Below, one piece after another: positions 1-26,850 of a stretch of 64,000 nt of DNA. Position numbers and translations under genes: made by a program. Every line of letters begins with the position of its first letter. Positions within the stretch are counted from its first letter, which is position 1. The notes beneath the pieces were generated by a model that was not told the DNA's origin, did not search any database, and saw nothing but the letters and a program-made list of their open reading frames with translations. Origin of the DNA: Chlorokybus atmophyticus (Eukaryota; Plantae; Mesostigma and Chlorokybus algae); NCBI GenBank assembly GCA_009103225.1, contig RHPI01000401.1, forward strand, positions 1 through 64,000, given 5' to 3'.

Positions 1-26
1 AAGAGAGAAGTTGTAGTGCACGGCGC

Positions 27-344
27 TCAGCGGCTGCATATGCAAGCACTACGTTGCTCGAACTTCCCCCGTGCTCCCACTTCAACACCGGTAATTTTGG
101 GACCCCCCGAGTCCTGATTTTTCACGCCATCTCGTCTGAATAATGATGACTTGATCCGTTTCACGCCTTTTGTCCGTGAATATCCAATGGTTATTGTACT
201 TTCTGTCCCATTCCTGCCAAAAGGAACAGTGTTCTTCACCCGCAAGACGCATTCATATTCAACGTACATACCACTGAACCTCGTTTCAACCCGTACACTT
301 TGCATTTCAAACTGAGTATTTCGTGCATATTCAAGGTCAGTCAA
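27..344 (-). CDS. Possible exon(s) of an unidentified gene at the window edge
   Basis: Open frame with protein-like composition (FEMQSVRVETRFSGMYVEYECVLR) preceded by a CTGAC...CAG acceptor-like signal; no recognisable motif. Confidence 0.2.
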   Translation of the reverse strand: MTDLEYARNTQFEMQSVRVETRFSGMYVEYECVLRVKNTVPFGRNGTESTITIGYSRTKGVKRIKSSLFRRDGVKNQDSGGPKITGVEVGARGKFEQRSACICSR

Positions 345-500
345 GTTGTACTTGATGCACGATATGGTACAATGAATTGTCAGTGCCCAAACAGCAGAAT
401 AATCACCCAGCGTGTGTGGTGCTGGCTACGACTTGCTGCGAAAACCCCGAGTCCTAAATACCATTGCATAGTCACCGTCATATTCAGGGAACATTTAGCA

Positions 501-658
501 TGAAATACACCAAGTCCCAAGTGCCATCGAACATTCAACACCACTTGACAAAACTGCCGATGTGAAATTACACCAAGTGCCAAGTGCCATTGAAAGTTCA
601 ACACCACTTGGCAAAACTGCCGCTGTGAAATTACACTAAGTCCCAAGTGCCATTGAAA
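501..658. repeat. Tandem repeat, about 63-bp unit, about 2.5 copies
   Basis: TGAAAT(T)ACAC(C/T)AAGT(C/G)CCAAGTGCCAT recurs three times about 62-63 bp apart. Confidence 0.85.
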
Positions 659-794
659 AGGCAAGCATGCTAATGGCATGCATTCCAAATTCTATTCTAT
701 TAAGCACAAAGTTAGCTTGGGCTACTATTACACAGCTGGCCAATGAACCTGTGCTTTTGACTACAATTTAGCTATGTACCAACCGCCTGCTACT

Positions 795-2665
795 TCACAT
801 CCGCCGTGACGTTTGCTGTGCTGGCATGCTGTCCATGAGTGTTCGCAGTCGTCTCCTTAAGCTGTCTGCCTCTTTTGGACGAAACCAATCCTTTTGCATC
901 TGCGTTGCACACACCCACACCATCTGGTTGCTCAACACATGTCAACCTACACGACTTTGCACTAAGGCAGCTGCCATATGGAGACATTCCAATGCATGAG
1001 CTGTACCTGCTGAAATATCGGGGCGTTTTGCTCAATCGGACTAGCTTGTATCCCATCTATAAACCTGTCAAGGTAAACAATGACAAACAGCCCGCACGCA
1101 ACTCCATCCCTCTGCTGAGGGACCTGCACGAACACGCTATGTCAATGCGGGCGAACCAAACGTATGTGCATCTACATAGGGATTGTGCTGGGAGAGGGCG
1201 TGACCTCATCACCAGGCCAAAACAACATGTCCTACCTGTGGATCAAGTAGCGGGACGTTTGCGGGAGAGAAGCGCTGTTGCGACTCACTTCCATGCTTCC
1301 TGCCCCACATATAGTTTAGATAAGCGCGCATTGGTCCGTCGACGTTGCGATGTAGACCAAGGGAGTCGAGATGGACGATCAAGGGCGGCGTGTTGCTTCC
1401 AAGTTCCCCTCCAGGATTGCACACCAGCAGCAGACTCCAGTGAGACCTGTGGCATGCAGACTTCAAAGTGAGTCCATGCGAGCAAGTACAGCAGCACTGC
1501 AGTGCGAGAACCTGGCTTCACTCTCACCGGCTGTCTGGGTTGACAATTGCTGCCAGCAAGTTCTTGGAAAACGGATCGTTCTCCCACCTATCTATCCTGT
1601 GATTGCCACTGTGCCAGTTATGTTGTTCATGGCAGTGCACAATTTTAGTGTAGAAGTGCGGGTTGAACAGCCTCACGTGAATGCCTTCAGCTCTGCCCAC
1701 GACCTCCTCTTCCTTATATCTGCGCGTGCGTGTCACATACATGACACAGCTGCACAACACCAACAACGCAAGGCTCATACCTGCAAAAGAAGTGGAGCAC
1801 GGTGTCGTTGAGCTCCTGTCTGCCGTCCAGCAACTTTCTGTCCGCTTCAAACACTGGCACCGCATCACGTGCATTTGCACTAGGGTAAATGAACAGGGGC
1901 ACAGGTGTTGACGCCTCAACTTCAGCACCCGGCCCGTCCAGCACCATGATGTCATCATCGCTGTCAACGAGGTCCACAACTGCTGCAGCCGTCGCGGTTC
2001 CTTGACTTGGGTGCTGGCGACGTTCCCCGTTGGCATCCTCATCATCAAGTTCCATCGGGACTGGCTCTGCAGCGTAAAAAGGTAGGATTATGCAATAAGC
2101 GCCGCAACGCAAACCAAGAAGCGCCGGCACGTTGCTGCTTACCACTCATATCCTCATCCCCGCACTCTTGAACAAAGCTTTTACCCACGCTTTCAGTCGG
2201 TGGTTGTGAAACCCAACCGCTGCTGCCCGGCAGAGAACGACGCGCGAGGCTATCCCTTGGAAGCTGTGCCGGAGCCCCACCTTCTTCGTACGCAGCGCAT
2301 TGCGAGCATGTGACCGAAAAGATGTTACCAACAGCATGACGTTGACAGAGGCTGTTTGGGCATGTCGCGCATACTTATCGAGCTGGTTCATTGCATCTGT
2401 GCACATGGCACCTGCGTTCCAGTGATCATTTTAGAACTTGTTGACTTCAGACACCATGCGTTCACTGGATACTGAAGCTTACTTGTGCCTTGGGCATTCC
2501 CAATGGTCATCTTCCACAGGTGGTACAGTGACGCAGCGTGCGTGGTAGCTCTTCCAGCAGCCTTCTGCATCACAGGCGAATATGCTACCGCCATCCTTGC
2601 AGACAAAGCAATAGTCTTCGTGTTCACGATTCTCCAATGCATCCAGCTCTAGCCCCGGTCTCATC
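795..2665 (-). pseudogene. PHD finger + C5HCH zinc finger + Ulp/SENP (peptidase C48) SUMO protease; one in-frame TAA
   Basis: Phase-compatible GT-AG exons give EDYCFVCKDGGSIFACDAEGCWKSYHARC...WECPRHKCHVHRCNEPAR*VCATCPNSLCQRH, then LFIYP...LNDTVLHFF, FNPHFYTK, SHWSLLLVCNPG, HLDSL, PQQRDGVACGLF and DWFRPKEADSLR. The His-Asp-Cys triad and oxyanion Gln are present. TAA at 2375-2377; final TGA at 795-797. Confidence 0.85.
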
Positions 2666-2919
2666 CTGCAAACCAAGGTCAGGTGCCCAGATCTGCAGTC
2701 ACACAACAGTAGGTATATGCAGCATCACAATAGCAAAGAGTACCTCATGTACTCAAAATGCCAGTCACGGCGTGTGGTTCACGACACCTCGCTCGAAGCA
2801 CTGTTTGTTTCGCTGTGGTCACCCTGCACCATGTGCATGTACACAAGATGGTTGTATGTGATGCCAAGACCCGGGAACTATGAGGACACCCAGATTCTCA
2901 CAAACAAATCTGCTCTCAC

Positions 2920-5900
2920 CGGAGTGAGTCGCGGTGCACACCTCGGCGCATGAGGCTTCGCCTGTCTTTGACAAGCGCTACTGTTATTTTGGTGTCATAC
3001 GGGTCAATACCCTCAAACCACTGGCCCTTGACCTGCCAGCAAGGACATGTATCACCCAATCTCACTCTACCATCAACTCGCAAAAACCGCTGCAACACAC
3101 CTACTTACTAGGTTGCAATCAAGGTAGGTTTGTTCTGCAAAGCGGGGCTTGTCTTTCCTCAGGATTGCAAAGCCTCCCATGTGCTGCACCTGGTTGCTCA
3201 TGTACCACCTCGCTCTGAGGAGCTGGTGCTCCCAACCGGCTACCACGACAACATCAAAAGACTGCACCCTGCCATACCAGTGGACCTTCTTGGTTGGGTC
3301 ATTTGAGTCACGCCCAACGGTAAACACTCCGCAGTCCATAGTGCGGAGCTTCTTCTCAGTGTCCTCCGCTCTGAACTGGCCAATGTCCTTGTAGCGCGCT
3401 CTGTAGTACCTCATAATGTACTTTGGAAACATGGGACCACTCAACAGCTCCATCTCGTGTTGAGTAAGCTCCCTATCAGGTCCACGCCAATGATGCAGCT
3501 CAGTCATGTGCTCCATGTCACTGGTCACGAGATTCCCTTGTGCTTGGGCCCTTTCGCGTGTCTTCCGCCGTTTTTGAACAGCCCGACTGAATTCTCTGTT
3601 TACCAACCCATTGTGGACTCATAATATGCAGGGGACATTGCGTACCAAACAACGATTGCTAAAGCAACTTACTCTTTTAGCTGCCTGTACTCATCGTCAT
3701 TTTCGGCCAACCACCACTCCAGCTCCTGCCTGATCTTGCTATCTTTCTCACACTCAACACGGTGTCTGCGCCCGCAGAGGACATAGTCATCATCATCTCG
3801 CTCCTTGCCCGATCGCAGACTGATGCCGACGAAAAGCCTCTTCAAGGTGTCCATGTAAGTGTTCAACATGAGCTGGATGGAGTATCTGCAGACATAACTT
3901 GCATTTAACACAAGTCAAAGAACGAGAGTACGAAACAGGTTGCATGCAACTTTTAGTTGGCCCAGACTTGCCTTTTGCAGATGCTTGCTTCCACATGCTG
4001 CCTGGCAAAAATCATGCGCTTCACCCACTGCATAAATCGTTCGTCGGCCCACTCCCAGTGATCACGCACCGGACCAAGCCACATGCATTGCTCTGGTAGA
4101 TGGCCAAGGAGGTGCAGCATCATTGTGAGCGAAGTCCGCGGGAAGAGCAGCTCCACCTCAGACTGTGCCTCATGCACCAGCACCTGCGATGAATAATGCA
4201 AGTCATGCAACCTGTAGAAGCTAAGCATACACATGGAAGGTATGGTTAAAGCCCTAACCTGCAGTTCTTCAAGGTGTGACTGCTTCACTTCCAATGCAGT
4301 CAGCCGCTGATAGATGTCGCAGAGTTTGAGGATTGTTTTCTTCTGATCTTCTCCAATGTCATGAGCAGAGCGCAGCACGTACTGGAAAATCACGGACCAC
4401 AAGTTGTGCTTGTCGTGCGATTTCATCGAGCCTGTGTGCTCACTACATCAGATTGTTAAGTAGACACAATGTGCAATGCAAGGACACTGAGTTGATTTGC
4501 ACGCAGTTGAGAACCATGGTGGTTGTCTCACCTAAATGCTTGGTGAAAGATTGCAGCTTAGAGCCGAAAGTGCTTGGAACCCTCACGCCTGAGAGTAATT
4601 GCTCAACCAGCCCTGCATCCGTGATTGCCCATGGAGCCTGAGGTTTGACCTTAACTGCAACTTCCTTTCCGTCTTTCGTCATCATCTCTGTCTGCAACGC
4701 ATCATCACAAAGTCACACGAGTTGGCAGGCAGTCATCACAAGTGTCGCATAAGCCTGCAATACCTGTAGCCAGAGTTCTGGCATACGACCTTGCTGCTGC
4801 AAATCTTCTCGACTCTCATTGCTGTCGCGCAATCCAGCAAGCAGATTGGCCAAATTGGTTGCGAGATTGGCAAGAATGTGCATAGGGCCAATCACATGAC
4901 CTTTTACAGATTTCTGTAAAGGCATCCAATAGGGAAGGTCGTGAAAACAGCTTAGGCCAAGGATTCCGGAGGACTTTGAAGGATGTTTCTTGGAGTGAAG
5001 TGGTCGCTTGCTGTTGCGGGATGTCATGGCGTACCTGATCACATGGCATCCATTGGTGAAGCTTGATTGACATAGCTACGTTCAGCTATGTCAATTGATT
5101 GGTTGCTCACCGGTACACACTTTCTGCAGTCCGCATGGGAGGTGGAGGTCTGTGTTCTGGTTGGGGCCAACGCTCATCAACTCGGTAGGAATGGTCATCT
5201 GGTAAGTACCGGCGGTAGCCTTGATAAATCACCTTTTTAAGGAGTTCCACATGTTCTCCACTGCACTCGCATTTGGAACAGCCAAAGATGGCTCCATGAG
5301 CCATCTGCATGGCTGCTTTTGCCAGAGCTGCGCAACCATCATTACATGTTTCAGAGAAGGCAAACATGGTTGCCATACCAGTCAGATAGTACATTCATAG
5401 ACACTGATGGCCAACACTTGCTGCTTGCGTACCTGGGTAATCATGGATTACAATCTCCAAGATAGATCTGCACCGGAAAACTTCGTCGCGGTGGCTGTCA
5501 TATATGTCGATGCCTACAACAAACACCAGCAGCTGAGATGCCCTACACATTCCAGTCCAGAGCAGTTTAAGAGCATGTTTGATGTATCGAGAGCTGGCTT
5601 GTTTAAACTACATTGAAACCACACCTTCCCAAAGGGTTCCCAACTGGTCAATGATTGGCTTGAGATAGGCCTGTAGATTCTCTGGCTGTTTGGGACCAGG
5701 TATCACCGCAGCTAGAAAGGTAGTGTCGGTCTTGTGCATTTTGGCAATGGGCAGGTTCAGCACAGAGATTGTGACAAGCCAAAATTCATAATTCCCTGCA
5801 AGTCCACACAAACACCTCGATCAATGCCAACTGTGAATTTACACACTGCAATGACAGCACAGGTAAAAGGCACAATCACTACCTTTATGCGGATCTTTGA

Positions 5901-7521
5901 AAGGGCTCATCCCGTCAATAAACATTGCCAGCCGCACATTACGCGGCTCTTTGATAAACCGGATGTAGCGTTCTTCTGTATGCTTGAACATTGGCGAGTC
6001 TGACAGCAGCAACCACATAAATAATAGTAAACATCTAAAAATTCAGGCTGCATTGGGCATCAACTTGTCAATCCACACTGCCATATACATACCGTGTATG
6101 GATCGTATAACCCCATCCTCACTGCGATTGGTGTGCGCTGTCATCTCCAAAGCGACACTAGGCTTTAGGTAAAGAGACCTCAGAGCAGCAGGCACGTCAA
6201 AGTAACGTGCAATCTTCCAAGGAACTTGTCGACCTCCAATGTTGCGGTGGCGAGGAGCCTTGCAGACTGCAGGCCATAGGAAGTTTGCATGCTGACAGGT
6301 GATCCCATGACAACTCAATCACACAAGAAATGCTACAATAGCTGACCTTTGCAGAATTTCCTGTTGGCATGTCGGCCATAATACACCATGTGGTCACAAC
6401 AACAGGCGTCATACGCGTGGAAGCCCATGTTGAGGCTTGCAAGGCATTTCAGTAGCTCTTGCATGCTGCCTGGCATCTGATTCTCCTTGGGCAAAACAAC
6501 ATCACGCACCAACCTGGCACACAAAGTCAAGTTCAATTGGAAATTAAACATTAATGTCTTTGCAGAATGTGTTTTGTATAATTTTGCAAACCTCTTATCC
6601 ACCAACCTTAGCAGTTTGTTCATGAAGTTGAAGGGTATTCGATGTAGCTGAGCGAGAACCAATAGCAGCATGGAAATGCCTAAAGGGGTTGTACGAGAGC
6701 CGGCAACAATAGGGTTGCTTGCATTGTCCAACAGCGCAGCATTCACCTTGTCAAGCAGCATTGCCTCGTCATCACCATGAGTGTCATACTGCTGCGACTC
6801 CACATCGGTATCGGAGTCTTGGTCTACGCCATCACCATCACCATCAACTTGCTCCGCATGTACTTGATTAGCGGTTGAGGGGGAGTGCGCTGGCAAATCA
6901 TGCTCGTGCGGAATTGTGTATTCTGGAGTTCTGGCACCTTGATGTCCTCGCGATACAGGATGCTCACCTTCAGAGAATGCTGGGTGCAATTCGCTCTGTT
7001 CCCCATGATCACACGGATGACATCCTGCCAACGCGAATAAATGCACTGGCACATGGACAATGACGTAAGCAATCAACTTGCAACTAAATTAGGTCGTACC
7101 TGCTGGGCGCATGTGATGTGCAACATTGACATGAGATGCCACACTCGTTTGCGATGGCGTGGCTGGGTGCAGTTGTTCAGCAGCGTAGTTCCATGCATGA
7201 AGTGTTTCGGTGTGATGGACAGCATCATCTGAAGCAGGCAAGCTTGGTAATCAGACAGCCTGTTGATGAAGTACACCAACTCAGGAAGATTACTCTTGTA
7301 CCTGACAGCATGTGCGAGGATGCAGCAGCAATAACAGCGTCAGCCTCTTCAAGTTCATCGGGTTCGAGAAGATTACGGTATTGCGGTTCAACAGCTTTAG
7401 GAGTGCCCATCCACATCCTTGTGCCATGGTACTCATGGTTTTTGGCCCTAGTGATGTGCTTGTGTGTGAACACTTTGCTCCCTTGGCAATCTTCGCAGAA
7501 ACACCTGCGATTGTAGCTCAT
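2920..7521 (-). CDS. CACTA/CMC DDE transposase (Transposase_21 + DUF4218 + DUF4216-like), about 16 exons
   Basis: Manual splicing gives a continuous frame: CKVC, EPRNVRLAMFIDGMSPF (D1), NLP...IPGPKQP...YLKPII, IHDYPA (D2), CSKC, RRYLPDDH, LPYW, PMH, MKSHDKH, HLLGH, WEWADERF (E), WYGRV...ARWY, GQWF..IDPYD. One intron (3971-3886) is GC-AG. The 3' end is uncertain and may continue into the PHD exon. Confidence 0.9.
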
Positions 7522-7809
7522 GCTACAAAGATGTTTAGTCAACTATTATCCTGACATACAACCACCAAACTATCTAGAGCCCTGACCTGATACCGCCGCC
7601 GCCGCCGCTGATACCGCCTTCGCCGCCGCTCTAGCATCGCTGTTGTAGAATTAGGGTTTAAAACCGTCAATCCTAAATTGAAAGCTAGATCCAGTATAAG
7701 CCGCGGCTTCAGTCCGGATGTGCTCCGTAATTTGCGTACGTGCTCCAGTTTTTCTTCCGTGAAGTGCATCAGCTACTAGGGTTTAAATGGTAGGTTGCGT
7801 GGCGGCAGT
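7522..7809. promoter_or_regulatory. Short divergent intergenic region, putative bidirectional promoter with two telo-box-like motifs
   Basis: 288 bp between the transposase ATG (7521, minus) and the methyltransferase ATG (7810, plus). TTAGGGTTT at 7651-7659, TAGGGTTT at 7777-7784, and CCG runs. Confidence 0.4.
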
Positions 7810-9482
7810 ATGCGCGGCGTCAAGGTGTGCAGTTTCTGCAGAGCATACTTGGTTAGAAACGGCAACTTGAAACGGCTGCAACAGCATGAAGAGAAGTGCA
7901 AGCTGTACAGTGAGCAGTATGGCTTCTATGAAGCCTGCTGGCACCATAAGGCCCGGGGAGATAACGTGAGGCAGTGCAGGCTTCTAGCAAAATGCATGAA
8001 GCCAGACTTCTTTGTCGAGGAATGCACTTGCCTGCAATGCTCGCTCTCCAAGTTTGAGTGGGACGGCGAGCCCATGGATCACCTGCCTTGGGCCCGGCCT
8101 GGAGCATATCAGGATGGGCAGGAGTGTGATGTGGTGCGACGTCAGCTCGCGCGCAACGGTCGCGGCAAGTCCACAGTCCAAGATGATCACAACAACAAAG
8201 TGAGTTGAACTGTCCTGTCCTGGCGCACAAACAGCGCTCTCATACGTAAGCAACTCACTCTTCAATGTTGAAGGGGAATGTAGCAGTAGTTGATGCAGTT
8301 GACGATACCGCGATAATAACCGCGTGGCGAAAGGAGATTGTTGATGAGGGGCAGTCTTTGGTAGCAAGCCGCGTCGTGGTATACTGGCTTGGAATGAGCA
8401 CCTGGTATGCAGGCCGCATCATCACTTTCAATGCCAACACAGGTACATGTGTCCAAATAATGCAGAGTATGTGATGTACGTGCGCGTGTTTACGCAAGCA
8501 CTGGCTCAGTAAAACATGTGGCTCAGGAAAACATACCATCAAGTACGACGATTACGATGAGGATCCGCGGCTGCACCACATCTTGTTGAAAAACTGGAAC
8601 ATCGCAGCTGTGCGTGAGGGTTACAACATGCAAGATGTCGTTGCAGTGATGGTTCGAGTTTGTGGTCAAAGCTGTCTGAGACTGCAAGACTTGCCTGGTC
8701 GCGAGCTCGATTATTGGCCCAGGCCACCACCCCTTCTCGTAACTCGCACACCATGCGACTCAAGCGGTAGACGTTACAGGCCACGCGCATTGGATCTCTT
8801 TTGTGGTGCCGGTGGCGTTGCTATGTGTCTGTATAGGGCTGGGTTTGATGTTGAGGGTATAGACATTAAGCCACAGCCGGCATACCCATTCAAGTTCTGC
8901 CAGATGAATGCAATGGACGCTGACCTGTCAGCATACAATGCAGTGTGGGCAAGTCCTCCATGCCAAGCTCTTAGTGGAGCCATTCCCACGACACAACGGT
9001 CCGCATACGGATATCGATGGGATCACGTCAACCTGATTGACCCCATAAGAGCCAAGTTGCAGTCGAGCGGCAAGGCATGGGTGATAGAGAATGTCGCAGG
9101 CGCGTCAGGACACATGACAACTCACCTGAAGCTGTGTGGCAGCATGTTCAAGTTGGATGTGTATCGCCATAGCATCTTCGAGACAAACCCTCTAGTGCGC
9201 TCAGACTTAGAATGCAACCACACTGGTTCTGCACTTGGAGAGCTGGCCACCCACCCGGAGCAGCGCCGGCAGTTGCTACCTGGGGAGAGGCAAATTTACC
9301 CGGTATACGGCCAAGCATCTTGCCGTGGTACGATTGCAGGGTGGCAGTCTGCCATGCAGGTGGAGTGGATGGATGCGGAATCGGAAATCAAGAATGCTAT
9401 TCCACCTACTTACTCTGAACATGTAGGCAGGCTGTTGCTGAAAGCGATAGGTTTCAATGTCGATTACCCTCCTTTTTACTGA
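7810..9482 (+). CDS. Cys-rich N-terminus + Tudor domain + phage/actinobacterial-type DNA (cytosine-5) methyltransferase; 3 exons, about 504 aa
   Basis: Exons 7810-8199, 8274-8442 and 8527-9482 join in frame. Tudor-like LVASRVVVYWLGMSTWYAGRIITFNANTGKHTIKYDD. MTase motifs: I DLFCGAGG, II GIDI, IV ASPPCQ, VI IENV, VIII CGSMF...YRHSIF, IX AMQVEWM, X NAIPPTYSEHVG. Confidence 0.9.
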
Positions 9483-9567
9483 GACACGTAGAGGACTTTG
9501 CAGTTGTAAGCTCTCTTGATTGCCACAGAGGTCTCATTTGTGATCACACCTGCAGAATGGTAAGGTT

Positions 9568-12162
9568 TCACTGAGGTTGCCGCTGCTGCTGCTCTTTGTG
9601 CTCGCGCCGCTGCTTCCGCTGCTCCTTCTTTTGCTGGCACTGTTGCTTCCGCTGCTGCCGCTTCTGCTCACGCTCCTGAAAGAGTTGCTGCTTCAGCTGC
9701 TCCTGCTGCTCGAGTGTTGGCTGCTTGCCTATCACTGCTCGCTCACGCTCATGTTGACGTTTCTTAGCCAGTTTCTTGCTTTGCCGCCGATCATCAATGT
9801 GTTCACGTTTTTGCAACTTTAACATCTCCATGGAGTTTGCTTTGCGTGCGGAAAAATTCTCTCGATTGAGATGGTGCTTTTGCAAAGTCTCATTCAGCTC
9901 GTTTTCGTTTTGCTTGCAAGTGCGCACAAGCTCGTTGAACTGGTCATCCCGCCAATCCTGGTTCAAAGGACCCTTCGCAACGCAATTGCGCACTCCTTTC
10001 CTAAGCCCCTTGAGAAAAAGCTGTAGTTTGAGGGCATCATCCACCTGCAGCGCTGTCGCGTTGGCAACCATACACAGATGTTCGAACTGCGCGTGAAACT
10101 CCTCCACTTTGCGACCTGCCTGCCGCAGATGGCGCAGCTTCTTAAAAGCGCCGGCAGGGGTGTTGTCCATTTGCGAAGGAGCTCGGTTGCGAGTACGACG
10201 GCGTTTGCGCTTCTTGCTTGTGGTGGCACGACGAGGAACACCAGAGGAAAGACTACTGGTTGATGTGCCAGATTCATCAGAAGAGCTCTCATTGCCCTGC
10301 ATTGCATCAAGCTCGGTGCCACATTGCGCAACTCCACACTTGCTCTTGCACGCAGACAGCATGACAGTGCTCACCTGTCCATCAGCTGGGCTCATGGGTT
10401 CCGCCTGATTCTGGACTTCCACCTCAACCTCTTGGTTGACCTGTGCCTGCTTGGCCTTGGCCTCAGGCTGCTTCTCCCTGGCCTTGGCTTCAGCCAAAGT
10501 CTGCTCCTGCCTGGCCCTGGCTTCAGTCTCAGCCTGCTCTTGCCTGGCCCTGGCTTCAGTCTCAGCCTGCTCCTGCCTGGCCTTGGCTTCAGCATCAGCC
10601 TTGGTCTTCGCCTCGCCCGCCTGCCTGGCCTTGGCCTCAGCCTGCTCCTGCCTAGCCTTGGCCTGTGCTTGCTGCTTCAAGCTGGCCTCGACCTTCTTCA
10701 TGCACTCTGGACCCATCCTCAGCTTTGGCTTTTGGACCTTCGCGCTTGCCTGGGTCTCAACCTTGCCTTCTCCCTTGGCCTGGGCCTCAGCCTCTTGCAC
10801 ACACACAGCTTGCGACTGCACAGGGGGTCTACTTGAAGATGTAGGCGCCTGGAGTGGCGCCGATTTGGCACTGGGTGCTGATTGCGGAGGACCATCAGGG
10901 TACAGGCAGCGCAGGACTTCTGGTGGCATGTCACAGAGCTGCCATGAGAGCCTACCACTCGCATCGCCAAGAGACATGTAATGCGCGCATGCCTTGCTCC
11001 CGTCTGTATTGCCAATAATCACATGGCCAGCCACTTTCTGAACATCCTCGCCGATCAGCACCACAAGCTTGATACACTGCAGCTTTCCTTTGTCATCAGG
11101 TTTATAATACCTCCCGTCATCCCCTTTGCTGAGTACCCCCTTGTCCTCCGCTTATAGGATGTACTTGCAGTCACCAACCTCCTTGAGCTGCACGGTGCCA
11201 ATGCAAATGCCCAGTGTGTGCGCCAGCAGCGCCAATTGCAGTTGATCCGCATAAACACCCTCATGACTGATCACTTTCTTCAGAGCAACAACAGCTGCAT
11301 CACCTTCATCTTTTCCATCGAGAACCGTTGTTACCCGGAATTTCTTGGCGGCCTTCTTGTAGTCCTCGCCCATGTCACCAGAGGCCCCGTAGTTACGATA
11401 CGTCCGTAACCAACGAACGTTGACCTGGTCGGCACACATCTTGCGCAACTTGGCAGCTTGATCTCTCGTATGCAGCTCTTTGCCGTTGTCCAGCACGATG
11501 CTTCGCCAGAAAGCCTCGTTGTTGATTGCGCCCACGCGTTCCAGGCACGCAGCGTTGACGGGAGGGCGCGACTGGGCAATGCAAGAGTAGAAGCAGTTGC
11601 CATCAGCATAGGCGTCAAAGAGCCGCAGCTTTGTCTCATGCAGCAGCAGTCCAATCAGCTCCGCCTCATCGCCCGGTTGTGGAGGAGGTAGACCAGACTC
11701 CCAACGACCACCAGTAGATGCACGACCCGTTGATGTGCCCACTTCAGCTTCAGGTTCTCCGACAAAGTTCCCAAGGTCAATACTCGCAGCTGCTGCCTGC
11801 TTGTCACACAGCTTGCTGAGCTGCCGCCGCAAGAACTGATCCAACTTGACTCTCCATTCATGCGAGAGGGCGAGCAAATCAGCTTTCTCCAACCGCTGCT
11901 TGTATTTGACCACCAGCTCTTCCCATGTAGGGCAGTCTTCCTTTTCCTCTCTCCATACTTTTGCATAACCTACGCAAAGGGCCTTGAAATCATTGAAAAC
12001 CTCTTCGTCGGTCTTGTTTGCCCGGATCTGCGGCTTCTTCACCTCTTTTCCTGGTTGCAATGACCGGTATGAGCACGAGTTGGTGTGAGAAAGTTTACAC
12101 ATTCCAAGAGTACCTGCACGCTGCTGCTGACCACTTGGCAAGACCTTCTGCTTTGGTGCCAT
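9568..12162 (-). pseudogene. OTU deubiquitinase + repetitive coiled coil + retrotransposon Gag-like domain; one in-frame TAA
   Basis: The 364-aa and 498-aa ORFs are in the same frame, separated only by TAA at 11152-11154. OTU motifs AYADGNCFYSCIA, GVYADQLQLALLA and AHYMSL. Gag-like AFKKLRHLRQAGRKVEEFHAQFEHL...LFLKGLRKGVR. Confidence 0.8.
10440..10690 (-). repeat. Coding tandem repeat, 33-bp unit (about 11 aa, AETEARARQEQ-like)
   Basis: CTGCCTGGCC(C/T)TGGCTTCAG recurs with 33-bp spacing at about 10508, 10541 and 10574. Confidence 0.8.
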
Positions 12163-12247
12163 TATGAACAACCTGTGTCGACACACACAGAAAAACTTAC
12201 AAGCAGACACGAAATGATCAAGTGAGCCAAGTTTGGAACTGAGCAAG

Positions 12248-13372
12248 CAGGGACCTTACGCACGAGGCTGCCCCATGAGGTCAGCATGAACAGAGGCGTG
12301 AATTGACAACATGCAAGACAAGGTTTGCTTGAGGTCAGCATGAGCATGCAGGGGCCTTACGCACGAGGCTGCCCCATGAGGTCAGCATGAACAGAGGCGT
12401 GAATTGACGACATGCAAGACAAGGTTTGCTTGAGGTCAGCATGAGCATGCAGGGGCCTTACGCACGAGGCTGCCCCATGAGGTCAGCATAAACAGAGGCG
12501 TGAATTGACGACATGCTAGACAAGGTTTGCTTGAGGTCAGCATGAGCATGCAGGGGCCTTACGCACGAGGCTGCCCCATGAGGTCAGCATGAGCATGCAG
12601 GGGCCTTACGCACGAGGCTGCCCCATGAGGTCAGCATGAACAGAGGCGTGAATTGACAACATGCAAGACAAGGTTTGCTTGAGGTCAGCATGAGCATGCA
12701 GGGGCCTTACGCACGAGGCTGCCCAATGAGGTCAGCATGAACAGAGGCGTGGATTGACAACATGCAAGACAAGGTTTGCTTGAGGTCAGCATGAGCATGC
12801 AGGGGCCTTACGCACGAGGCTGCCCCATGAGGTCAGCATGAACAGAGGCGTGAATTGACAACATGCAAGACAAGGTTTGCTTGAGGTCAGCATGAGCATG
12901 CAGGGGCCTTACGCACGAGGCTGCCCCATGAGGTCAGCATGAGCATGCAGGGGCCTTACGCACGAGGCTGCCCCATGAGGTCAGCATGAACAGAGGCGTG
13001 AATTGACAACATGCAAGACAAGGTTTGCTTGAGGTCAGCATGAGCATGCAGGGGCCTTACGCACGAGGCTGCCCCATGAGGTCAGCATGAGCATGCAGGG
13101 GCCTTACGCACGAGGCTGCCCCATGAGGTCAGCATGAACAGAGGCGTGAATTGACAACATGCAAGACAAGGTTTGCTTGAGGTCAGCATGAGCATGCAGG
13201 GGCCTTACGCACGAGGCTGCCCCATGAGGTCAGCATGAGCATGCAGGGGCCTTACGCACGAGGCTGCCCCATGAGGTCAGCATGAACAGAGGCGTAAAAA
13301 CGACAACATGCAAGACAAAATTTGCTGCAATATAGCCTGAGCATGCAGGGGCCTTACGCACGAGGCTGCCCC
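12248..13372 (-). repeat. Tandem array of 101-bp and 47-bp units sharing one core; 14 cores
   Basis: CTTACGCACGAGGCTGCCCC starts at 12255, 12356, 12457, 12558, 12605, 12706, 12807, 12908, 12955, 13056, 13103, 13204, 13251 and 13353. Confidence 0.95.
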
Positions 13373-14378
13373 CTACGATCAGCATGAGCAAGAATGGGCC
13401 TTGAGAGCGGTCAGCAAAACAAGCGCAAACAAAGAGGAGCGCGGCATGCACTACACCTGGCTTGCGAATTCTTCAAACCCTACCAAGCTGCCTATGAAGC
13501 TGCAAGAGAGATCTACACAAAGCGGTTGGAGCACCGATGCGAAACGGCTTGCAGTACACCACCACAGCAACCACGCCGCCTCCCGCTCACACCGCCGCCA
13601 CCACCGGCCGCCGCCACCGCCGCCACAACCGCCGCCTCAAACCACGTCACGCAAAAAATGCTGCACTACTGCAGGTGCTCAACTCCAAACCCTACAACCG
13701 TGCACTATTCATTGAAGCAACCCTGTACCGCGCGGCAGGCGGCGCTGTACTGGGCAAGGGTCATTGAATGATGTATTGCAAATTGGGTGCAATCGATCCA
13801 TCTGTAAAAATGCATGTAGAGGGTATGAATTGCACCAGGTAGTCCTATATGCAGCAACCAGGTATAGGCCGTCACTATAGAACAACCACATGGAAACAAA
13901 GACAGTAGATGCACATGTGAAGGTTGTGTAATTTTGTGCGTGGTACAAGTGCACATACAATTCCAGCACTTGCACTAGACCAGCCCCCCTAGCTGTAGTT
14001 GTTGTGGTTGTGCCTGGTGTTGCTGGTTAATGTGACGGCTGGTGCACGGTGTGTGTTGATTGGGGGCGCCGTTATTTTCCTTAAACAATGTGGCGTGCAT
14101 ATGCGCATGCATTAGATATGTAACAGACTACGCATGTAAGCATGTTGCGTACAGAAAACGCAAGACATGCGTGTGATGGAGTACCCCGTATGCACAGACA
14201 GCAGCCGCTATAACAGCAGGTTCTCATTGCAGGCAGGCAGGAAGCACATGTATACAACGCCACTGGCCTATTGGAACTGGTCTTATGGCCCACTGATCGA
14301 GCAGCTAGGGGCCTACTGGAACCTCAACAGCAAGACATTGAAAGAGCAGCTATGTACAAGGTGAAAACTGCTGCTGAC

Positions 14379-14830
14379 TCAATTGGAGTAGTCATAGCCG
14401 TGACCATCGCTGTCGTAGTCTCCCATGGTGGCCTCGTTATACTCCGACAGCTCGCTATCGGATGCAGCGAGTGCCAGAAAGAGGTTGTAAATCTCCTCCC
14501 TCACGTTATCGGGGAGATTGGGCACCCTCCGTATGCGATAGCGCATGCGACGGAACTTGTACTTGTAGCGGGCGGCATATACATTCTCCGCTATAACATC
14601 CTCCAGTTCTACACCAAGCCTGTCTATCTCTTGACGCTGTGCAGACACCTGCGTTGCTAGAGTTTGGTCACAATGCATGCTACCAACAGATATCAGCAGC
14701 TTACAGATAGTGCAAGTCATACCTTCCTGCGCAAGTCGGCAACGGTTTGCCGCAGCTCTCTCACGTCGTGGCGCAGCCAAGCCGATATGCACAAGCATGC
14801 ATGCCAACAGAGACGTATACAAACCAGAGC
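14379..14830 (-). CDS. Small coiled-coil protein of unknown function; 5' end uncertain
   Basis: A phase-0 intron joins WLRHDVRELRQTVADLRRK to VSAQRQEIDRLGVELEDVIAEN...DYSN*. Confidence 0.4.
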
Positions 14831-15330
14831 AAGCCTGCACAACAAGAAGGTTTACACACAGTGAGGTGGAATACCAGATCAAAGGGCGTGGCGGCGAGGG
14901 AAGAAGGCGACGGCGCATGCCAACAGAGACTGGGCAAGAAGAGGCTGGCCGTGCGTTGACTAACTTGGTCAACACACAAACACATATGCACACACACATG
15001 CACAGACAATGAAGCATCTCAACTTTGTGCATACACAAACCAGAGCAAGCCTGCACAACAAGAAGGTTTACACACAGTGAGGTGGAATACCAGATCAAGG
15101 GCGTGGCGTCGAGGGAAGAAGGCGACGGCGCATGCCAACAGAGACTGGGCAAGAAGAGGCTGGCCGTGCGTTGACTAACTTGGTCAACACACAAACACAT
15201 ATGCACACACACATGCACAGACAATGAAGCATCTCAACTTTGTGCATACACAAACCAGAGCAAGCCTGCACAACAAGAAGGTTTACACACAGTGAGGTGG
15301 AATACCAGATCAAAGGGCGTGGCGGCGAGG
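14815..15330. repeat. Tandem repeat, about 215-bp unit, about 2.4 copies
   Basis: AAACCAGAGCAAGCCTGCACAACAAGAAGG starts at 14821, 15037 and 15252. Confidence 0.9.
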
Positions 15331-16068
15331 GAAGAAGCACTGTGGGAAGAGGGACGGCGGCGGCGCCATTGGAAACAAGACTACAACTGCAACAACCTTG
15401 ACGCCCACATGCACACAACCGGCGTGGACGAGGGTTTCATAATGTGGCACCCTGTCAAGTCTCAGCCCATTGCTGAAAGCCTAGTGCGTCGGCAGAGGAC
15501 TGAGAATTGACAGTCGCAAAGTCACCCCCGACGCTGCCGCGCACGCCGTTGATACTGCCGCCGACCACGCCGCCCGCAACTCCAAACCCTAATTCGTACC
15601 TGATCGGTCCTGTTGAGCGATATTCTTGTACCTGACACCCGCCTCTTAAATTGGAGGGGTGTAACAGCTGGCCAAACGGCTGTTTCCTCAACTCGGTGCA
15701 AATAGGCTGCAATTTATGCTGATTGTGGCGGTGAGTCTGACAAGCCTGAGTTGATAAGTAGCCCTGATGGGTATCATGTCGCTGTCACCCACGCCGCCAT
15801 AGCCATGGCTAGCCATGATAGAGCGCCCATGTTCTTGTGGGGAAGTCCCGTGCCGCCGCCGGTGCTAGTCTTTGTTGAGGAAGTCCCGTGCCGCCGCCCT
15901 CGCCGGTAAGCAGCTGATGGTCACCTGCGCTTGGGAGCGCTTGCTTGCTTGGTTTGTTTGCTTACTTGAACATCTGTGCGTGTGCCGGTGTGTGTGTGTG
16001 TGTGCATGTGTGTGTGGGTGGGTGGGTTGGGCTTGTGTTGTTACTTCTCGTGGTTGGGGCAAAACGCT

Positions 16069-17356
16069 GGGGCAGCCTCGTGCGTAAGGCCTCGGTGACC
16101 TTCCCTGCGCCCTTGCACAAGTTGGTTGGGGGAAAACGCTGGGGCAGCCTCGTGCGTAAGGCCTCGGTGTCCAGGTTGCATGCTTGCATTATGCGTGTGG
16201 TTTTCAGTTTCAGTAGTTTTGCGGTGGTCACCTGCGCTTGGGTGCGATTGCTTGGATGGTTTACTTGCTTGCCTTCACATATGTGCGTGTGCTGGTGTCT
16301 GTGTGTGTGTGTGGTGGTTGGGGGGTGGGGGCTTGGGCTTGTGTCGTTGCTTGTCGTGGTGTGTAAGTTTCCTTCAATTGCAAGCCCGTGAACTCAGTCA
16401 TACCTGCGTGCATGTACATGCAGGTCATGAAAGCATCCGCGAGCGGAAGCCTGGCAAAGCGTCCCAAGACGCATTCAAAGACGCCTCAGCCATTGCCATA
16501 CATGAGTCCAGAATTGACTGACAAACTTCTCCAGGTGGGCAAGCGCCCGGGGAAGGTGCAGCGCTGGTTGGGGAAGGTTAGCATCGGTGACGGATACAAG
16601 CAGTGCAAGCTTGATGACTGGGCGGTATCCACGCATGGCTACGAGGACACTGGCCCTTTGGCTATTCGAACCGTTGTGAAGGGTCCAGTGACGTGCAATG
16701 TATCGCAGCATGAGAGAGCCACCAGCCCGGCGGCGCCGCCCGACCCTGTGCCCGACCCTGAGCCCGCTCCCATGCCACTGCTCACGTCCTTCGATGTTGG
16801 CGTCATTGGCTACACTGCTGTGCGTCTCACCATCGAGACCGTCAATCAGACTCCAGTTGGCTGGAGCCTTGCATCGGGATCAGTTGTGGGGGATGTGCTG
16901 CGCGCAGGGCCGATCATACCTATCGTGGATGGACCTTGGCCCATGCAGCTACCCGAGGCCCAGTGACTCTGTGCACATGCAATGCGTGTACAGTTTTGTG
17001 CAGGTTCAGGCTGTCATAGTGGTGCTGTCTGAGCCATGTACCAGGTTCAGCAGTGACCTTGGCCAGTGACATTGGCGAGCAAGCCCTTGGCCCCATATAT
17101 ATATATATTCTTGCATGTAAGTATGTGTAGATGCATGTGTGCGATCAGTCTGCAGCACTGCATCAAAGAATGCAATGGTGGGAGTACAACTTAGGCTGTG
17201 TACATGGTCTGCTGATGTCCGTCACAGATTGCATTCCCCGACATGTGTTGGTGTATGTGCTGGGGCAGCCTCGTGCGTAAGGCCTCGGTGTCCTTCCCTG
17301 TGCCCTTGCACAAGTTGGTTGGCGCAAAACGCTGGGGCAGCCTCGTGCGTAAGGCC
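16069..17356 (+). repeat. Four further copies of the GGGGCAGCCTCGTGCGTAAGGCC core, inverted relative to the 12-13 kb array
   Basis: CCTCGTGC at 16076, 16148, 17269 and 17341, as two pairs each 72 bp apart. Confidence 0.9.
16427..16966 (+). CDS. Hypothetical protein, about 179 aa
   Basis: ATG directly after a TGCAG acceptor; uninterrupted, protein-like ORF; no motif recognised. Confidence 0.45.
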   Translation: MKASASGSLAKRPKTHSKTPQPLPYMSPELTDKLLQVGKRPGKVQRWLGKVSIGDGYKQCKLDDWAVSTHGYEDTGPLAIRTVVKGPVTCNVSQHERATSPAAPPDPVPDPEPAPMPLLTSFDVGVIGYTAVRLTIETVNQTPVGWSLASGSVVGDVLRAGPIIPIVDGPWPMQLPEAQ

Positions 17357-17415
17357 TCGGTGTCCAGGTTGCATTCTTCTTGTAAATGCGTCTGCAGTTG
17401 TGATGGTTGTGGGTG

Positions 17416-17503
17416 AGTTGTCAACTACTACTACCAGTGGGGCTCGCAACAACCACATTAGTGTGGAATTCGTGAGCCACACTGGCAGTAGTAGTTGACA
17501 ACT
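17416..17503. repeat. Compact 88-bp inverted repeat with 30-bp arms (2 mismatches)
   Basis: AGTTGTCAACTACTACTACCAGTGGGGCTC at 17416-17445 versus its near reverse complement at 17474-17503. Confidence 0.9.
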
Positions 17504-18237
17504 ACGGGTTGTAGCTCCGCCTAAACAGATGTTCGAGTTATTTATTCTTTATTATCGCAATTTGGTACACTATAGTACATAAGCAATTTGGTACACTATA
17601 GTACACAAATGCAACATTATTCATTGTCATCTTTGTGCTTGTGACAGGCGGCATTTATTATGGTAGGTCGGAGACAGAGTCGTGAGTCGTGAGTCGTGAC
17701 TGGGGGAGGTCGGAGACAGAGTCGTGAGTCGTGACTGGTGTCTGATAAGCACATTTGCTGACGTGTCGAGCAGAATGCACAATCGATTCCATACGCACGG
17801 CAGTACCCTACGCAGTGCTTGTTGCTCGTGGTGTTGGCGGCGGCGACGACGGCGGTAGGTGAGCGGCTGCTAGCGGCACACTTGTCTGTCTCACTGTGCT
17901 GCTATCGGTTTCATGCTCAATTCCTCATGACCATAAAGCACAGCTTTCTTGTAGACATGCAGGCAAGGTTTGTGCATGCACTGGCATTTGCCGGCTAGCT
18001 TGCTGTTCAGCTGCACTAAGTCATGTTAGCAGCTGGCAGGGAGCTGAACGACGTGCTTCGGCAAGGTAAAGTACAGTTTGCTTGATGTGTGAAGTACATG
18101 CACATGGCCAAGCAGCTGCAGGCAACTGAGGCAGTTAACTGAGGTTTCTGGTTGAACAGTGTTGCGGTTGTGCACAGCTTGACAAGCAGTTTGACCTACT
18201 AGTTTGACCTACTCAATACACAGGTGGAGCAGTGGTC

Positions 18238-20908
18238 ATGTCAGGCACGACGTCTGGTGGGCGGTCTAGCGACCTGAGTGGAGGCTGGGAAAGCTTGGAC
18301 GATGAGATCTGGGGCAAAAGTGCTGGTGCACCATCAGATGAGCAGCTCCAGCGTGAGTGGGAAAAATCTGAGAAGACGGCTCACCTCCGCGACCTTGAGA
18401 CCACAGCAATGATGCCCTTGAAAGTGAGCTTACAATGATGTGCAAGCAACCACTATCAATATGAGCATGTGCTGCCGGAGTCTGTCTCGATTTTTGAGGT
18501 TTGCACAAGCAACTCACACTGTTGATATTGTTGTAACAGCGCTCTAGTATGCAATATTTGCACTGTGTAGGCACTAAAGGTCCTTCATTGGCGTGGTCAG
18601 CATCATACCAGTGATCGCCGCGATATCACAAAGCTGGCGGACAAGGGCCGGATTTGCTATGAGTACTGTCGTTTGCTACCGGGGAAGACCCAGACGAAAC
18701 AGGACCCACTTAAGTTTGCTCTTGCAGTTACATGCTGGCATCTGCTTCATCCAGAGTTCCGTCCTGAAAAGGTTGGCAAGGTTGTCAGAGTGTCACCAGC
18801 TGTCGAGCAGCATAGTTCAAGCTTGAAGGATATGGCATTCGGTGGCAGTCACCACTCTGGGCCTGGTGCAGGCAAAAACAATAATTCAGGACTTTCTTAC
18901 CAACAAAAAGGCATATACCAACGCCAAGCACAAAGAAAGGCAGAGACAGAAGAGTAGGGAACGTTACAAGGAGATGATAGAGCGCGCTGAAGCAGGGGGG
19001 TTTGAGCGAAAGCGCAAGGGAGCGCCCAGGGACAAGAACAACAAGGTGTGTGCCATGCAGTGACTGAGTTGTCTGTGCAATGTTTGCATGTCTTAAGTGC
19101 TTTTGCCATGTGCATAATTGCAGGTCAAAGACAAGTCAAAGGCAAGAGACAGCTCCTCGCTGCACCACTCTGCCAGCGACGCCGAGAATGCCACCTCACA
19201 GGGTGAGCTACGGTTTGGTAAATGACTATGTTGAGAACGAAACGCTTTGTGTTTGATGGTGCCTTATGTATGCAGGGTGTGAGGTGTGTATGATAGTCCC
19301 TTGTGCATGCACGGCGCCCACGCGTTCACCTCCCGCCAGCAACACCAGCGACGACCGAAATGTCACCTCGCAGCGTGAGCCATGTTTTGCGCGCGCGAGT
19401 CGCTACGGGAGGTATTGTGTATACACTGTTCTGATCGGTGCCTTGTGCGTGCGATAGGTAACAAGGAAGGCACTGCGCCACAACCCACAAGGTCACCCGC
19501 TACTGGTTCACAGGTTAGATGTCTGTCATCATTACACGAGCAGCCAAATGCTTGTACTCTCCTGTACATGTCATCATGACCGTTCATGGCTGTTGTGTTC
19601 AGGCACCTGCCAAACAAGATGCTGATGTGCGTGATACCAGCTCAGCTCTCAAGGTATGCAACAACGACTGGAGCAAGTACTTAACAAGCATATCAGTTTT
19701 TGCAACCGAAATCGCACCACATGTAGACACAGGACGCCGCGAATGTCATGGAGCTCATGAAAGAAAAGGAAGGCAGAGGGCAAGGGAAGCGCAAAGTGTC
19801 TGGTGATGTACGCACCACTCTGCTTCACAACAAATGGCGTAGCATTACGTTGTGGCTCACAATCTGATGTGTATGCCGTTGGCAGGAGACTGAGGTGTTA
19901 AGCCCCCAAAAGAAAGCAAAGACTGTTCGCTCAATTCCGGCTCCCTACAAGTCTAAGGAGGCAGGCCCCTCGTCTGGCAAGCAGGAGAAGATGTTGGATC
20001 AAAAGAGGGGCAAGCAAAAAGAGGTATGAAGGACCATCTATGTGCGCTTATGGGCTTCTTGGATTCTTCTGGTTGCGGAAAAACTGTCACTGCAGCAGAC
20101 TCGCATGCATGCCTATCAATTGTAAGCTTGATAACACGGCGTGCCACCTGGTTGCACAGGATGAGCCATCGTATTCAAAAGTATCCGAGACAGACAAAAG
20201 CGAGGACAACGATGAAGATGGCGCCAAGGACGATGCGAACAGCCCCAACGACAGTGACAACGACTCCCAAAAGGCAGGTTTTTTTGCAAGCGCTATATAG
20301 GATAGTGCATCTGTGTATGTGTTTGCCAGTTGATGTGTTTGTCACTTGCATGCGCAGGAAGACCTGAGCGACAAGGATGACACTGCACCGACGATGAAGG
20401 TTGGTGATGAAGTCAAGTTGTTCATCGATGGGCGCAAGGAGCCAGTAGGGGAGGCGCACGTAAGCGACATCAAGCCCGTCAACAAGTTTTATGGCAAGAA
20501 GATTGGAGAGGGTAACATGGTGGTCCAGTTCAGCCGCAGTCTTCACATCACTAGGACCTGACGTCCTGGTGCAGGGGAAGAAGAGGTTGTGCCTTTGCCA
20601 ATCAGCTTCAAGCGTGATGGGGTTGGAGTGCAAGTGACCCACTTGAGAGGTGAACGATGATTGCGTGCTGACTGTGCGTGCGTTATGACAACACACTGCG
20701 TCTGACGTATTCATGTGTGGTTGATGCATGTGAAGAGTGCGAGGCGGGGTTGTTGCTACTTTGGCCTACTAGGTTGATGAAGACCATCAAGGTGAGGGAG
20801 CTGCCAGCAAAGGAAGGCACATCCACACCGCGGGGGAGAGGCCGTGGGAAGGGGAGTTGGGGTGGTCGGGGTGGTCGGGGTGGTCGGGGGCGAAGCAGCA
20901 GGAAGTAG
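18238..20908 (+). pseudogene. TnpA/Tnp1-like CACTA accessory protein; multi-exon, disrupted
   Basis: Many short GT-AG introns and acidic/basic low-complexity exons. C-terminal KVGDEVKLFIDGRKEPVGEAHVSDIKPVNKFYGKKIGEGNMVVQF...GLLLLWPTRL resembles the En/Spm Tnp1-like C-terminal domain, followed by an RG-rich tail. Apparent frameshift near 18840 and TGA at 20559-20561. Confidence 0.55.
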
Positions 20909-21699
20909 ATATTGCCGCAGGAGATTTCCACCTGCAAGTGCAGCTCTGGGTAGCAGACATACATTGTAGTCAGCATTGAATGTGTTGTTGTAAGTCGGCT
21001 GCCATTCAGCTGACATTGCTGGGCTGGCTGGACGGACTTCTGTGAATATTATCAGTAGCACTGCATATATGGGTCTTGTTCTACTCAAAATCACTTGAAC
21101 ATTCATAGTAACATTGACGGTCGTAAAACAGCAGCTTACCATTGTTTAACTTCATTGCCATTGAATAACTACTCACATGTAGGACTTTGCCATGTCACTG
21201 GAATAGCTGGTGACACTGTGAGTGAGTAAGGGCTCTGCATCTGAGAGCTTGTGAAGTGACTTGAACTGCAAGCACGCCGTCCCGGTTGCGAAGATGTCCC
21301 TCACCGCGTGAGACATTGTGCATGCTCTTGTGCTTATCATTGCTGCGAGCTTGGCGGCAGTGTGTGGTTGTGGTAGTCAGAGTATAGCATCCACGTGTTG
21401 CTTGTTCATTCACCTCACTTAAAAGTGTAGCACTTTATCCACTCATGCAAAGAACTGTGTAAACAGCACTATCTATAGTAGTGGCTTATTGACTCACAGT
21501 GTCACCCTCTTTGCTCAAGTGAGTGTGTCGCATTTTGCATAAGACAGTGCAGTCTGCAATTGGGGATACATCTCTGTGCATTTGTTCTCACTAACATCAC
21601 ATAGTGCGCACAAGCACTAGTGTGTTGAGTGGTAGCAGCATCAAGATAAGGTGGTAGAGCACAAACACTCTACCCTGCATACACTTCCACCTCTAGACC

Positions 21700-26518: not shown

Positions 26519-26560
26519 TTAGGGTTAGGGTTAGGGTTAGGGTTAGGGTTAGGGTTAGTG
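26519..26560 (+). repeat. Interstitial telomere-type repeat (TTAGGG)6 followed by TTAGTG
   Basis: Six perfect TTAGGG units at 26519-26554 then TTAGTG. Confidence 0.95.
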
Positions 26561-26628
26561 GCCAAGAAAGTCCAATTTTCGGTAATTTCTAAAATACAAG
26601 TACAATATATAGTACAGTAGCCATCCGA

Positions 26629-26850
26629 GTGTTAATGATAGACACGGGCACGCCAGAGAACGTGAGCGAACCTCTTGTGCGGCGCTTATGCATTCGTGTC
26701 ACCAAGTGTGATGGCCCGATTGTTGCCCTGAATAAGCATGAGATCCTTGTGCGGGGAGTTGTGCGCTTGTCCGTGCATGTGCAAGGCTATAATGCTCAAC
26801 TCAGCTTCTTCGTCATCCATGTTGAGGTGCCAGGCGTGGAGATCCAATAA
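26629..26850 (+). pseudogene. Retropepsin (Ty3/gypsy-type aspartic protease) fragment
   Basis: LMIDTGTPENVSEPLVRRLCI...GVVRLSVHVQGY...FFVI, with the D-T-G catalytic motif and typical spacing. Confidence 0.65.

Follow-up and report, generated by a model that had tools for sequence, protein, structure and literature searches.

A reading frame joining an OTU-like protease region to a Gag-like segment beside a CACTA/EnSpm-type transposase in Chlorokybus atmophyticus

A stretch of 64,000 nucleotides (nt) from the alga Chlorokybus atmophyticus (assembly GCA_009103225.1, contig RHPI01000401.1, positions 1 to 64,000 of the forward strand; hereafter the window) carries on its minus strand a long reading frame between positions 12162 and 9568. 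This open reading frame (ORF) joins a region resembling the OTU family of cysteine proteases, a helical spacer with short tandem repeats inside it and a segment resembling part of the Gag protein of retrotransposons. Pieces of a transposase gene of the CACTA/EnSpm type are encoded downstream of it by the same strand, upstream of it stands an array of a 24-nt motif, and a gene for a phage-type DNA methyltransferase occupies the opposite strand between the ORF and the transposase. A preliminary description of the locus had taken the frame for a transposon-borne OTU deubiquitinase fused to a capsid fragment of the Retrotrans_gag family. This article describes the parts of the frame and their surroundings and weighs what such a protein may be.

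The reading frame, its parts and its internal stop

The frame is open from 12246 to 9568, with its first ATG at 12162 and its stop codon at 9568-9570, 9568 being the final base of that codon. The sole internal stop is a TAA at 11152-11154, which is codon 337 of the minus-strand frame. The whole frame (9568-12162, 864 sense codons with the TAA skipped) has 865 codons with one internal stop, where about 40 stops would be expected in random sequence, so that it is coding sequence or was coding until recently. The reading favoured below takes the fusion for one coding unit, intact now or until not long ago.

From its start the predicted protein begins with a helical region of 165 amino acids (aa 1-165, 11668-12162), for which the family searches gave spurious matches only. 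The OTU-like cysteine protease region follows at aa 169-412 (10927-11658); it is the part matched by Pfam OTU and Peptidase_C65, and it is the part broken by the TAA. A linker rich in Pro, Ser and Ala then leads to a helical spacer rich in Ala, Glu, Gln, Lys and Arg (aa 457-586, 10405-10794), inside which Tandem Repeats Finder reports repeats of 33 base pairs (bp), that is, of 11 amino acids, at 10460-10601 (4.3 copies, 86% matches). Just ahead of the Gag-like segment come a stretch rich in Ser and a basic cluster, KKRKRRRTRNR (aa 650-660, 10183-10215), which was read from the sequence and is likely to be a nuclear localisation signal. The Gag-like segment itself, matched by Pfam Retrotrans_gag, occupies aa 672-728 (9979-10149) and reads AFKKLRHLRQAGRKVEEFHAQFEHL...LQLFLKGLRKGVRNCV; more helices come behind it, and a C-terminal tail rich in Gln, Lys, Arg and Glu (aa 771-864, 9571-9852) runs to the stop. 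The single frame with one TAA, the DGNC and HY motifs within it, the 11-aa repeat stalk and the segment with the pattern LRQ...FLKGL had all been pointed out in the preliminary description, and the present analysis agrees with it on each of them, as it does on the joining of the three parts in one frame.

Within the OTU-like region the TAA follows the Cys loop and precedes the His loop, so that the protease domain itself is cut, instead of two domains being separated. The stop had been seen before; its place inside the OTU domain and the possibility of a short intron around it had been missed. A candidate phase-0 intron of 102 nt (11077-11178, minus strand, GAG/GTTGGT...CTGCAG/TG) would remove the TAA together with 34 codons. 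The 2.6-kb ORF contains five G/GTNNG donors, one of which stands 24 nt ahead of the TAA and forms an in-frame pair with CTGCAG; the codons spanned by an in-frame donor and acceptor pair of this kind amount to 17% of the ORF, and since the criterion was picked after the site had been seen, its support for an intron is mild. Removal of the candidate intron gives no rise in the Pfam OTU score (16.8 versus 16.5 bits). Alignment of plant callose synthases to the window placed introns of about 87-170 nt in its callose synthase gene, which begin with GT and end with (C/T)GCAG or CACAG; one of these introns keeps the frame, and the mechanical ORF runs straight across it. A small intron and a recent nonsense mutation in this copy are roughly equally likely explanations of the TAA, and nothing in the sequence speaks for programmed read-through.

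The OTU-like region and the Gag-like segment

Three observations taken together make the assignment to the OTU family probable, namely a Cys loop, a correctly spaced His motif and a profile match that lies apart from both. The Cys loop, found by motif search, is DGNCFY (aa 187-192, 11587-11604, with Asp187 and Cys190), and the pattern DGNC[FLIVM][FYW] occurs exactly once in the six-frame translation of the window, which comprises 128,000 residues. The motif search also gave the His loop CAHYMSL (aa 392-398, 10969-10989, with His394), whose HYMSL comes 204 residues behind the Cys without a change of frame, beyond the TAA and at the right distance. The pattern H[YFW].[ST]L occurs five times in that translation, and from 5/128,000 we calculate a chance of about 0.005 of meeting it inside a window of 140 residues. 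The stretch aligned by Pfam OTU (aa 229-323, 11194-11478, profile positions 20-86) includes neither catalytic loop, so that it serves as an independent test of a family which the motifs had already named; by the definition of E-values, an E of 0.012 over 24,736 models would correspond to about 5e-7 for a single family named beforehand. On these grounds we hold OTU ancestry of aa 169-412 to be quite probable, and we would put the likelihood of present-day protease activity well below that. Of the earlier name, OTU deubiquitinase, the first word is accordingly kept as probable, on the two loops and the Pfam stretch; the second suggests an activity that the protein may or may not have, given a profile score under the curated cut-off and a Met two places after the catalytic His.

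The otubain family Peptidase_C65 was matched at E 0.04-0.5, under its curated cut-off, and the best phmmer matches in the PDB were the Cys loops of viral L-protein OTU domains at E of about 0.75, which is not significant. NCBIfam and PHROGs gave no match for the OTU half or for the Gag half. Structure prediction, which the preliminary description had proposed for both halves, yielded for the OTU part a single-sequence AlphaFold2 model with a predicted local distance difference test score (pLDDT) of 35, which is unusable and makes a Foldseek search meaningless; in this low-confidence model Cys190 stands at the N-terminus of a helix and His394 on a strand, and it is only in the order of secondary structures that the model fits an OTU fold. 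A weak tblastn match and an HYDSL motif near 17-18 kb hinted at another OTU relic, which was dismissed once the three frames had been read.

For the C-terminal part, Retrotrans_gag (PF03732) is the sole family matched in Pfam. The match covers aa 673-721 (10000-10146, minus strand) and positions 50-96 of the 97 in the profile, and on an excised piece of 226 residues it reaches 25.0 bits (E 2.3e-5) against a cut-off of 24.1. Ten control sequences, the reversed piece and nine shuffles, gave no Retrotrans_gag match, the best match of any family among them having an E of 0.037. Furthermore, the patterns LRQ.G..V.[EDQ][FY] and F[LI].GL[RK] occur once each in the six-frame translation, and the two blocks that they describe, LRQ.G..V.EF and FLKGLR, stand at the spacing found in Gag. 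The model of this piece consists of five helices (pLDDT 70, predicted template modelling score 0.44), its top matches in the fold search of PDB and BFVD are generic helical proteins with no capsid among them, and a sequence search of the PDB gave no match for the piece. We judge it fairly probable that the segment descends from a retroelement Gag, as a fragment and not as a whole capsid domain. The window itself contains, at 22483-23115 on the plus strand, an ORF with two CCHC zinc knuckles that is typical of the Gag of long terminal repeat (LTR) retrotransposons. BLASTP detected no similarity between it and the Gag-like piece, and an origin of the fused piece from the retroelements of the window was rejected.

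Transposon setting, interpretation and rival explanations

The transposase gene pieces downstream of the ORF consist of several minus-strand ORFs in different frames (3953-7076) and include a Cys-rich N-terminus (6333-7076), a Transposase_21 match (5107-5394, E 7e-6, 25.7 bits against a cut-off of 28.6) and a DUF4218 match (3953-4426, E 4e-10, 40.1 bits against a cut-off of 27). ORF pieces of CACTA/EnSpm type are spread over 3000-7076 of this strand. On the other side, about 80 nt upstream of the ATG, a 1.2-kb tandem array of 101-bp and 47-bp units (12240-13402, plus strand) holds 14 direct copies of the 24-nt motif GGCCTTACGCACGAGGCTGCCCCA (12252-13373), and four inverted copies of it, at 16068, 16140, 17261 and 17333, lie 3-5 kb away in 16068-17356 on the minus strand, whereas no chance occurrence would be expected. 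No terminal inverted repeats were seen next to either set. The direct and inverted arrays resemble the subterminal repeats of CACTA elements (PMC8978399), and the array beside the ORF is a candidate for both subterminal repeats and promoter region. In addition, the three minus-strand frames of 7077-9567 contain no protease, reverse transcriptase (RT), integrase or other Pfam match at E <= 0.05, and no long direct repeats flanking the ORF were found, so that the ORF does not belong to a nested LTR element. Both statements of the preliminary description in this regard, that no protease or RT is nearby and that no LTR element is nested here, are correct, the former locally; its view that the fusion is transposon-borne accords with the DNA transposase adjoining on the same strand, from which membership may be inferred.

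On balance, and with modest confidence, we favour the reading that the frame is a variable accessory gene of a CACTA/EnSpm-like cut-and-paste transposon, encoding a multi-part nuclear protein composed of an OTU protease and a Gag fragment. In such a protein the OTU protease would act on proteins of the transposon or the host and remove ubiquitin or a ubiquitin-like modifier. The basic cluster would direct the product to the nucleus, and the repeat-built helix would be a spacer, whose low content of hydrophobic residues suits a single stable helix no less than a coiled coil. The C-terminal part would have an oligomerising or DNA-binding role, that is, the Gag-derived helices and the basic tail would provide self-association or nucleic-acid binding, perhaps at the arrays of the 24-nt motif, as TnpA does in En/Spm, and the tail rich in Gln, Lys, Arg and Glu could itself bind nucleic acid. 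The preliminary description had likewise put forward the capsid fragment as a module for oligomerisation or assembly, a role that is hypothetical. The TAA would either be removed with the 102-nt intron or be a recent nonsense mutation of this copy. A bolder form of the same reading holds that a cut-and-paste transposon took up a retrotransposon capsid module and fused it to a deubiquitinase, giving a nuclear protein which assembles with itself or coats nucleic acid and so shields the transposition machinery from ubiquitin-dependent removal; this we regard as decidedly improbable. If it were true, Gag would have been reused by another class of mobile element and not by the host.

Several results weigh against the accessory-gene reading. 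The Pfam OTU score of 14.7-17.7 bits (E 0.005-0.045) is under the curated cut-off of 23.3, and the His loop adds nothing to that score, with or without the candidate intron. OTU enzymes usually carry Asp, Asn or Glu two places after the His, and the residue found there is Met396; a different acidic residue could replace the one expected. The Retrotrans_gag match, significant on the excised piece, falls to 22.0 bits (E 2e-4), under the cut-off of 24.1, when the ORF of 527 residues is searched, its E-value rescaled by our own arithmetic to a search of the whole window is about 0.01-0.05, and the matched positions are confined to the C-terminal half of the profile, the whole domain not being present; a Ser-rich stretch and the basic cluster occupy the place of the first half. 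Moreover, Foldseek with the pLDDT-70 model found no match in PDB or BFVD at E <= 0.001 and no capsid. The Gag likeness of the preliminary description thus stands in profile searches, narrowly and for the excised piece (25.0 bits), and it reaches neither the cut-off on the ORF of 527 residues nor more than half of the profile.

Homology searches and searches for element ends weigh in the same direction. A word-indexed search of 5.8 billion clustered proteins found no homologue of the N-terminus and OTU part and none of the Gag core; HMMER, run in full against 1.84 billion representatives, found no relative, its sole match, P0001, being rejected as a translated tandem repeat; scans of metagenome contigs with the protein and with the 24-nt motif, and of viral contigs with the OTU part, found nothing; and there is no second copy of the ORF elsewhere in the window. 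The copies without the TAA that the preliminary description had proposed to look for were accordingly not found in the window or in the protein, metagenome and viral collections searched. By contrast, the callose synthase of the same window matched hundreds of land-plant proteins, which puts the host within or close to the green plant lineage and indicates that the databases cover that lineage; the host genome itself is seemingly absent from the protein collection searched. Neither a pair of CACTA terminal inverted repeats, sought between 1-3200 and 12000-30000, nor a target-site duplication or matching flanks of the 24-nt motif arrays were found, and the left end of the element may lie beyond the window. 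Membership of the ORF in the element is accordingly inferred from adjacency, and it gains strength from the lack of any host-gene homologue of the ORF.

These facts leave room for other explanations, of which the most substantial is that of a dead chimera, in which a CACTA element fused OTU and gag fragments in the manner of Pack-CACTA elements and the product, broken by the TAA, has no function. The stop between the catalytic Cys and His, the Met two places after the His, the half-complete Gag profile and the single copy without homologues would all suit it, and CACTA elements are described as capturing and merging gene fragments (PMC6379663, PMC8903248). Old junk would not be expected to remain open over 2.6 kb but for one stop, which itself lies inside a plausible in-frame intron, and the order of the parts (protease, spacer, basic cluster, helical domain, basic tail) resembles that of a designed protein and not of a random splice, so we consider a dead chimera possible and rather unlikely. 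It is also conceivable that the Gag likeness has arisen by chance or convergence and that an OTU protease is joined to a helical, basic part that binds DNA and pairs element ends, an analogue of TnpA with no capsid ancestry. Scores on both sides of the cut-off (22.0 and 25.0 against 24.1 bits), the missing N-terminal half of the domain, the failure to find a capsid by fold search or any PDB sequence match, the lack of similarity to the CCHC-knuckle Gag ORF of the window and the position of the ORF directly behind the 24-nt motif array would all agree with this. The E of 2.3e-5 in a search of all Pfam models, ten control sequences being negative, and the two blocks LRQ.G..V.EF and FLKGLR, unique in the window and at Gag-type spacing, argue the other way and make chance resemblance unlikely.

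Two further explanations concern the unity of the frame and its owner. The genuine stop and the ATG codons beyond it would permit two products, a truncated N-terminal protein ending at the TAA and a spacer and Gag-like protein from a downstream start such as Met396; the OTU His loop and strands continue in frame past the stop, which would be pointless in a separate product, and the first protein would be without its catalytic His, so that a division into two products seems very improbable. A lineage-specific host gene that merely happens to lie beside a transposon insertion would account for the failure to find element ends. Against a host gene stand the lack of any plant or algal homologue in the databases searched, whereas the callose synthase matches hundreds, the position of the ORF among a motif array, a phage-type methyltransferase and a transposase, and the fact that transposons typically carry cargo such as OTU domains and Gag pieces (PMC2836005, PMC9741609); we take this explanation to be distinctly improbable.

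Several known systems resemble the accessory gene proposed here in part. OTU domains are borne by Helentrons and by Ginger1 transposases, where they have been suggested to protect the proteins of transposition or to act on DNA-repair signalling (PMC9741609, PMC2836005). The likeness to Helentrons or Helitrons and to Ginger1 consists in a papain-like OTU protease in a eukaryotic DNA transposon with a presumed target of the ubiquitin type (PMC9741609, PMC2836005, PMC6431247). In those elements, however, the OTU domain is fused to RepHel or to an integrase-like transposase, whereas here it would belong to a separate ORF beside a CACTA-type transposase, in which a repeat spacer and a Gag-like piece come after it, and the similarity of the OTU sequence here to theirs exists at the profile level only. 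In CACTA elements the second ORF is a variable one that can acquire additional domains, and Peptidase_C48, a ubiquitin-like-specific protease, is among these (PMC8978399); En/Spm families with several ORFs are known, including those of Chondrus crispus (PMC6431247). The present ORF resembles such second ORFs as a probable accessory gene beside Transposase_21 and DUF4218, accepting of domains and accompanied by arrays like subterminal repeats (PMC8978399, PMC6431247); unlike them it has an OTU instead of a C48 (Ulp1) protease, its Gag-like piece has no counterpart described there in the literature searched, and termini with CACTA were not found.

Pack-CACTA elements, for their part, are of CACTA type and carry and merge foreign coding fragments (PMC6379663, PMC8903248); they are non-autonomous and hold pieces of host genes, whereas the present locus has its own transposase and one long open frame. 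The large tegument deubiquitinase of herpesviruses (VTD family) offers a functional analogy only, in that a deubiquitinase is tied to an assembly of capsid type; relatives of the VTD family are also spread by transposons (PMC9741609), but the protease belongs to another family with no sequence relation, and any such assembly is hypothetical here.

The Gag-like segment can be compared with Retrotrans_gag of the Ty3/gypsy type in its block L-R-Q-x-G-x-x-V-x-E-F...F-L-x-G-L-R, which is at the family cut-off, and in the further helices and the basic tail that lie where the nucleocapsid would be. It differs in that the C-terminal half of the profile alone finds a match, there being no zinc knuckle, protease, RT or LTRs, and no capsid fold was recovered. 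Among the domesticated forms of Retrotrans_gag are Arc, PEG10/RTL and PNMA. Transposon-borne proteases of the ubiquitin type are widespread. A protease tied to a capsid-derived piece would link the reuse of Gag with the deubiquitinases of mobile elements, and the ORF would offer a compact protein with which to find out what such proteases do for a transposon. The evidence, weakly supporting as it is, suggests an unusual single-copy variant of the habit of transposons to carry ubiquitin-type proteases, here with a Gag-like fragment; as there is one copy, and its profile matches lie around or under the thresholds, the value of the case is that of a lead.

The antisense methyltransferase gene and other features of the window

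The gene that lies between the ORF and the transposase on the plus strand (8265-9482) consists of a Tudor-like exon, an 84-nt intron (8443-8526) and a phage-type C5 DNA methyltransferase; its end and the stop of the fused ORF are 85 bp apart. The methyltransferase matches phrog_363 at E 1.9e-23 and is 38-47% identical to proteins of four IMG/VR contigs (L001-L004). The Tudor-like exon (VVVYW..WYAGRI...) gives weak Pfam Tudor matches (E 0.016-0.033) on the spliced product, and the intron has GT..AG ends and carries an in-frame TGA. The cytosine methyltransferases described so far from transposons are those of retrotransposons (PMC5890265); a Tudor-like reader with a methyltransferase inside a DNA transposon, if that is what this gene is, would be notable and maybe of equal or greater interest than the fused ORF.

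Retroelements are found farther along the window. The retroelement parts nearest to the fused ORF are the CCHC-knuckle ORF and an RT ORF at 30701-32620 on the minus strand, LTR-like direct repeats occur within 27852-34251 with copies at 28012, 28635 and 33952, and an LTR-like pair within 36943-42410, 97% identical and 5.2 kb apart, stands at 36943 and 42111. The callose synthase gene (GT48) is of plant type and occupies 45042-52298 on the minus strand with large exons and short introns; its product shares 55-60% identity with land-plant proteins and is much more distant from yeast FKS1, for which reason a fungal origin was rejected. An assembly gap of N extends from 49681 to 50198 in this region. 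No spliced-leader relic was found in the window, so that a dinoflagellate origin has no support.

Among the repeats, a 215-bp tandem repeat (2.4 copies, 98% matches) is located at 14819-15337, a palindrome with 42-nt arms at 17416-17503 and a telomere-type hexamer, AGGGTT x7, at 26515-26558, inside a stretch of low guanine + cytosine content (0.40) at 26-28 kb. Over the whole window the CpG observed/expected ratio is 0.75 and that of CA/TG is 1.46, which together suggest cytosine methylation in the host.

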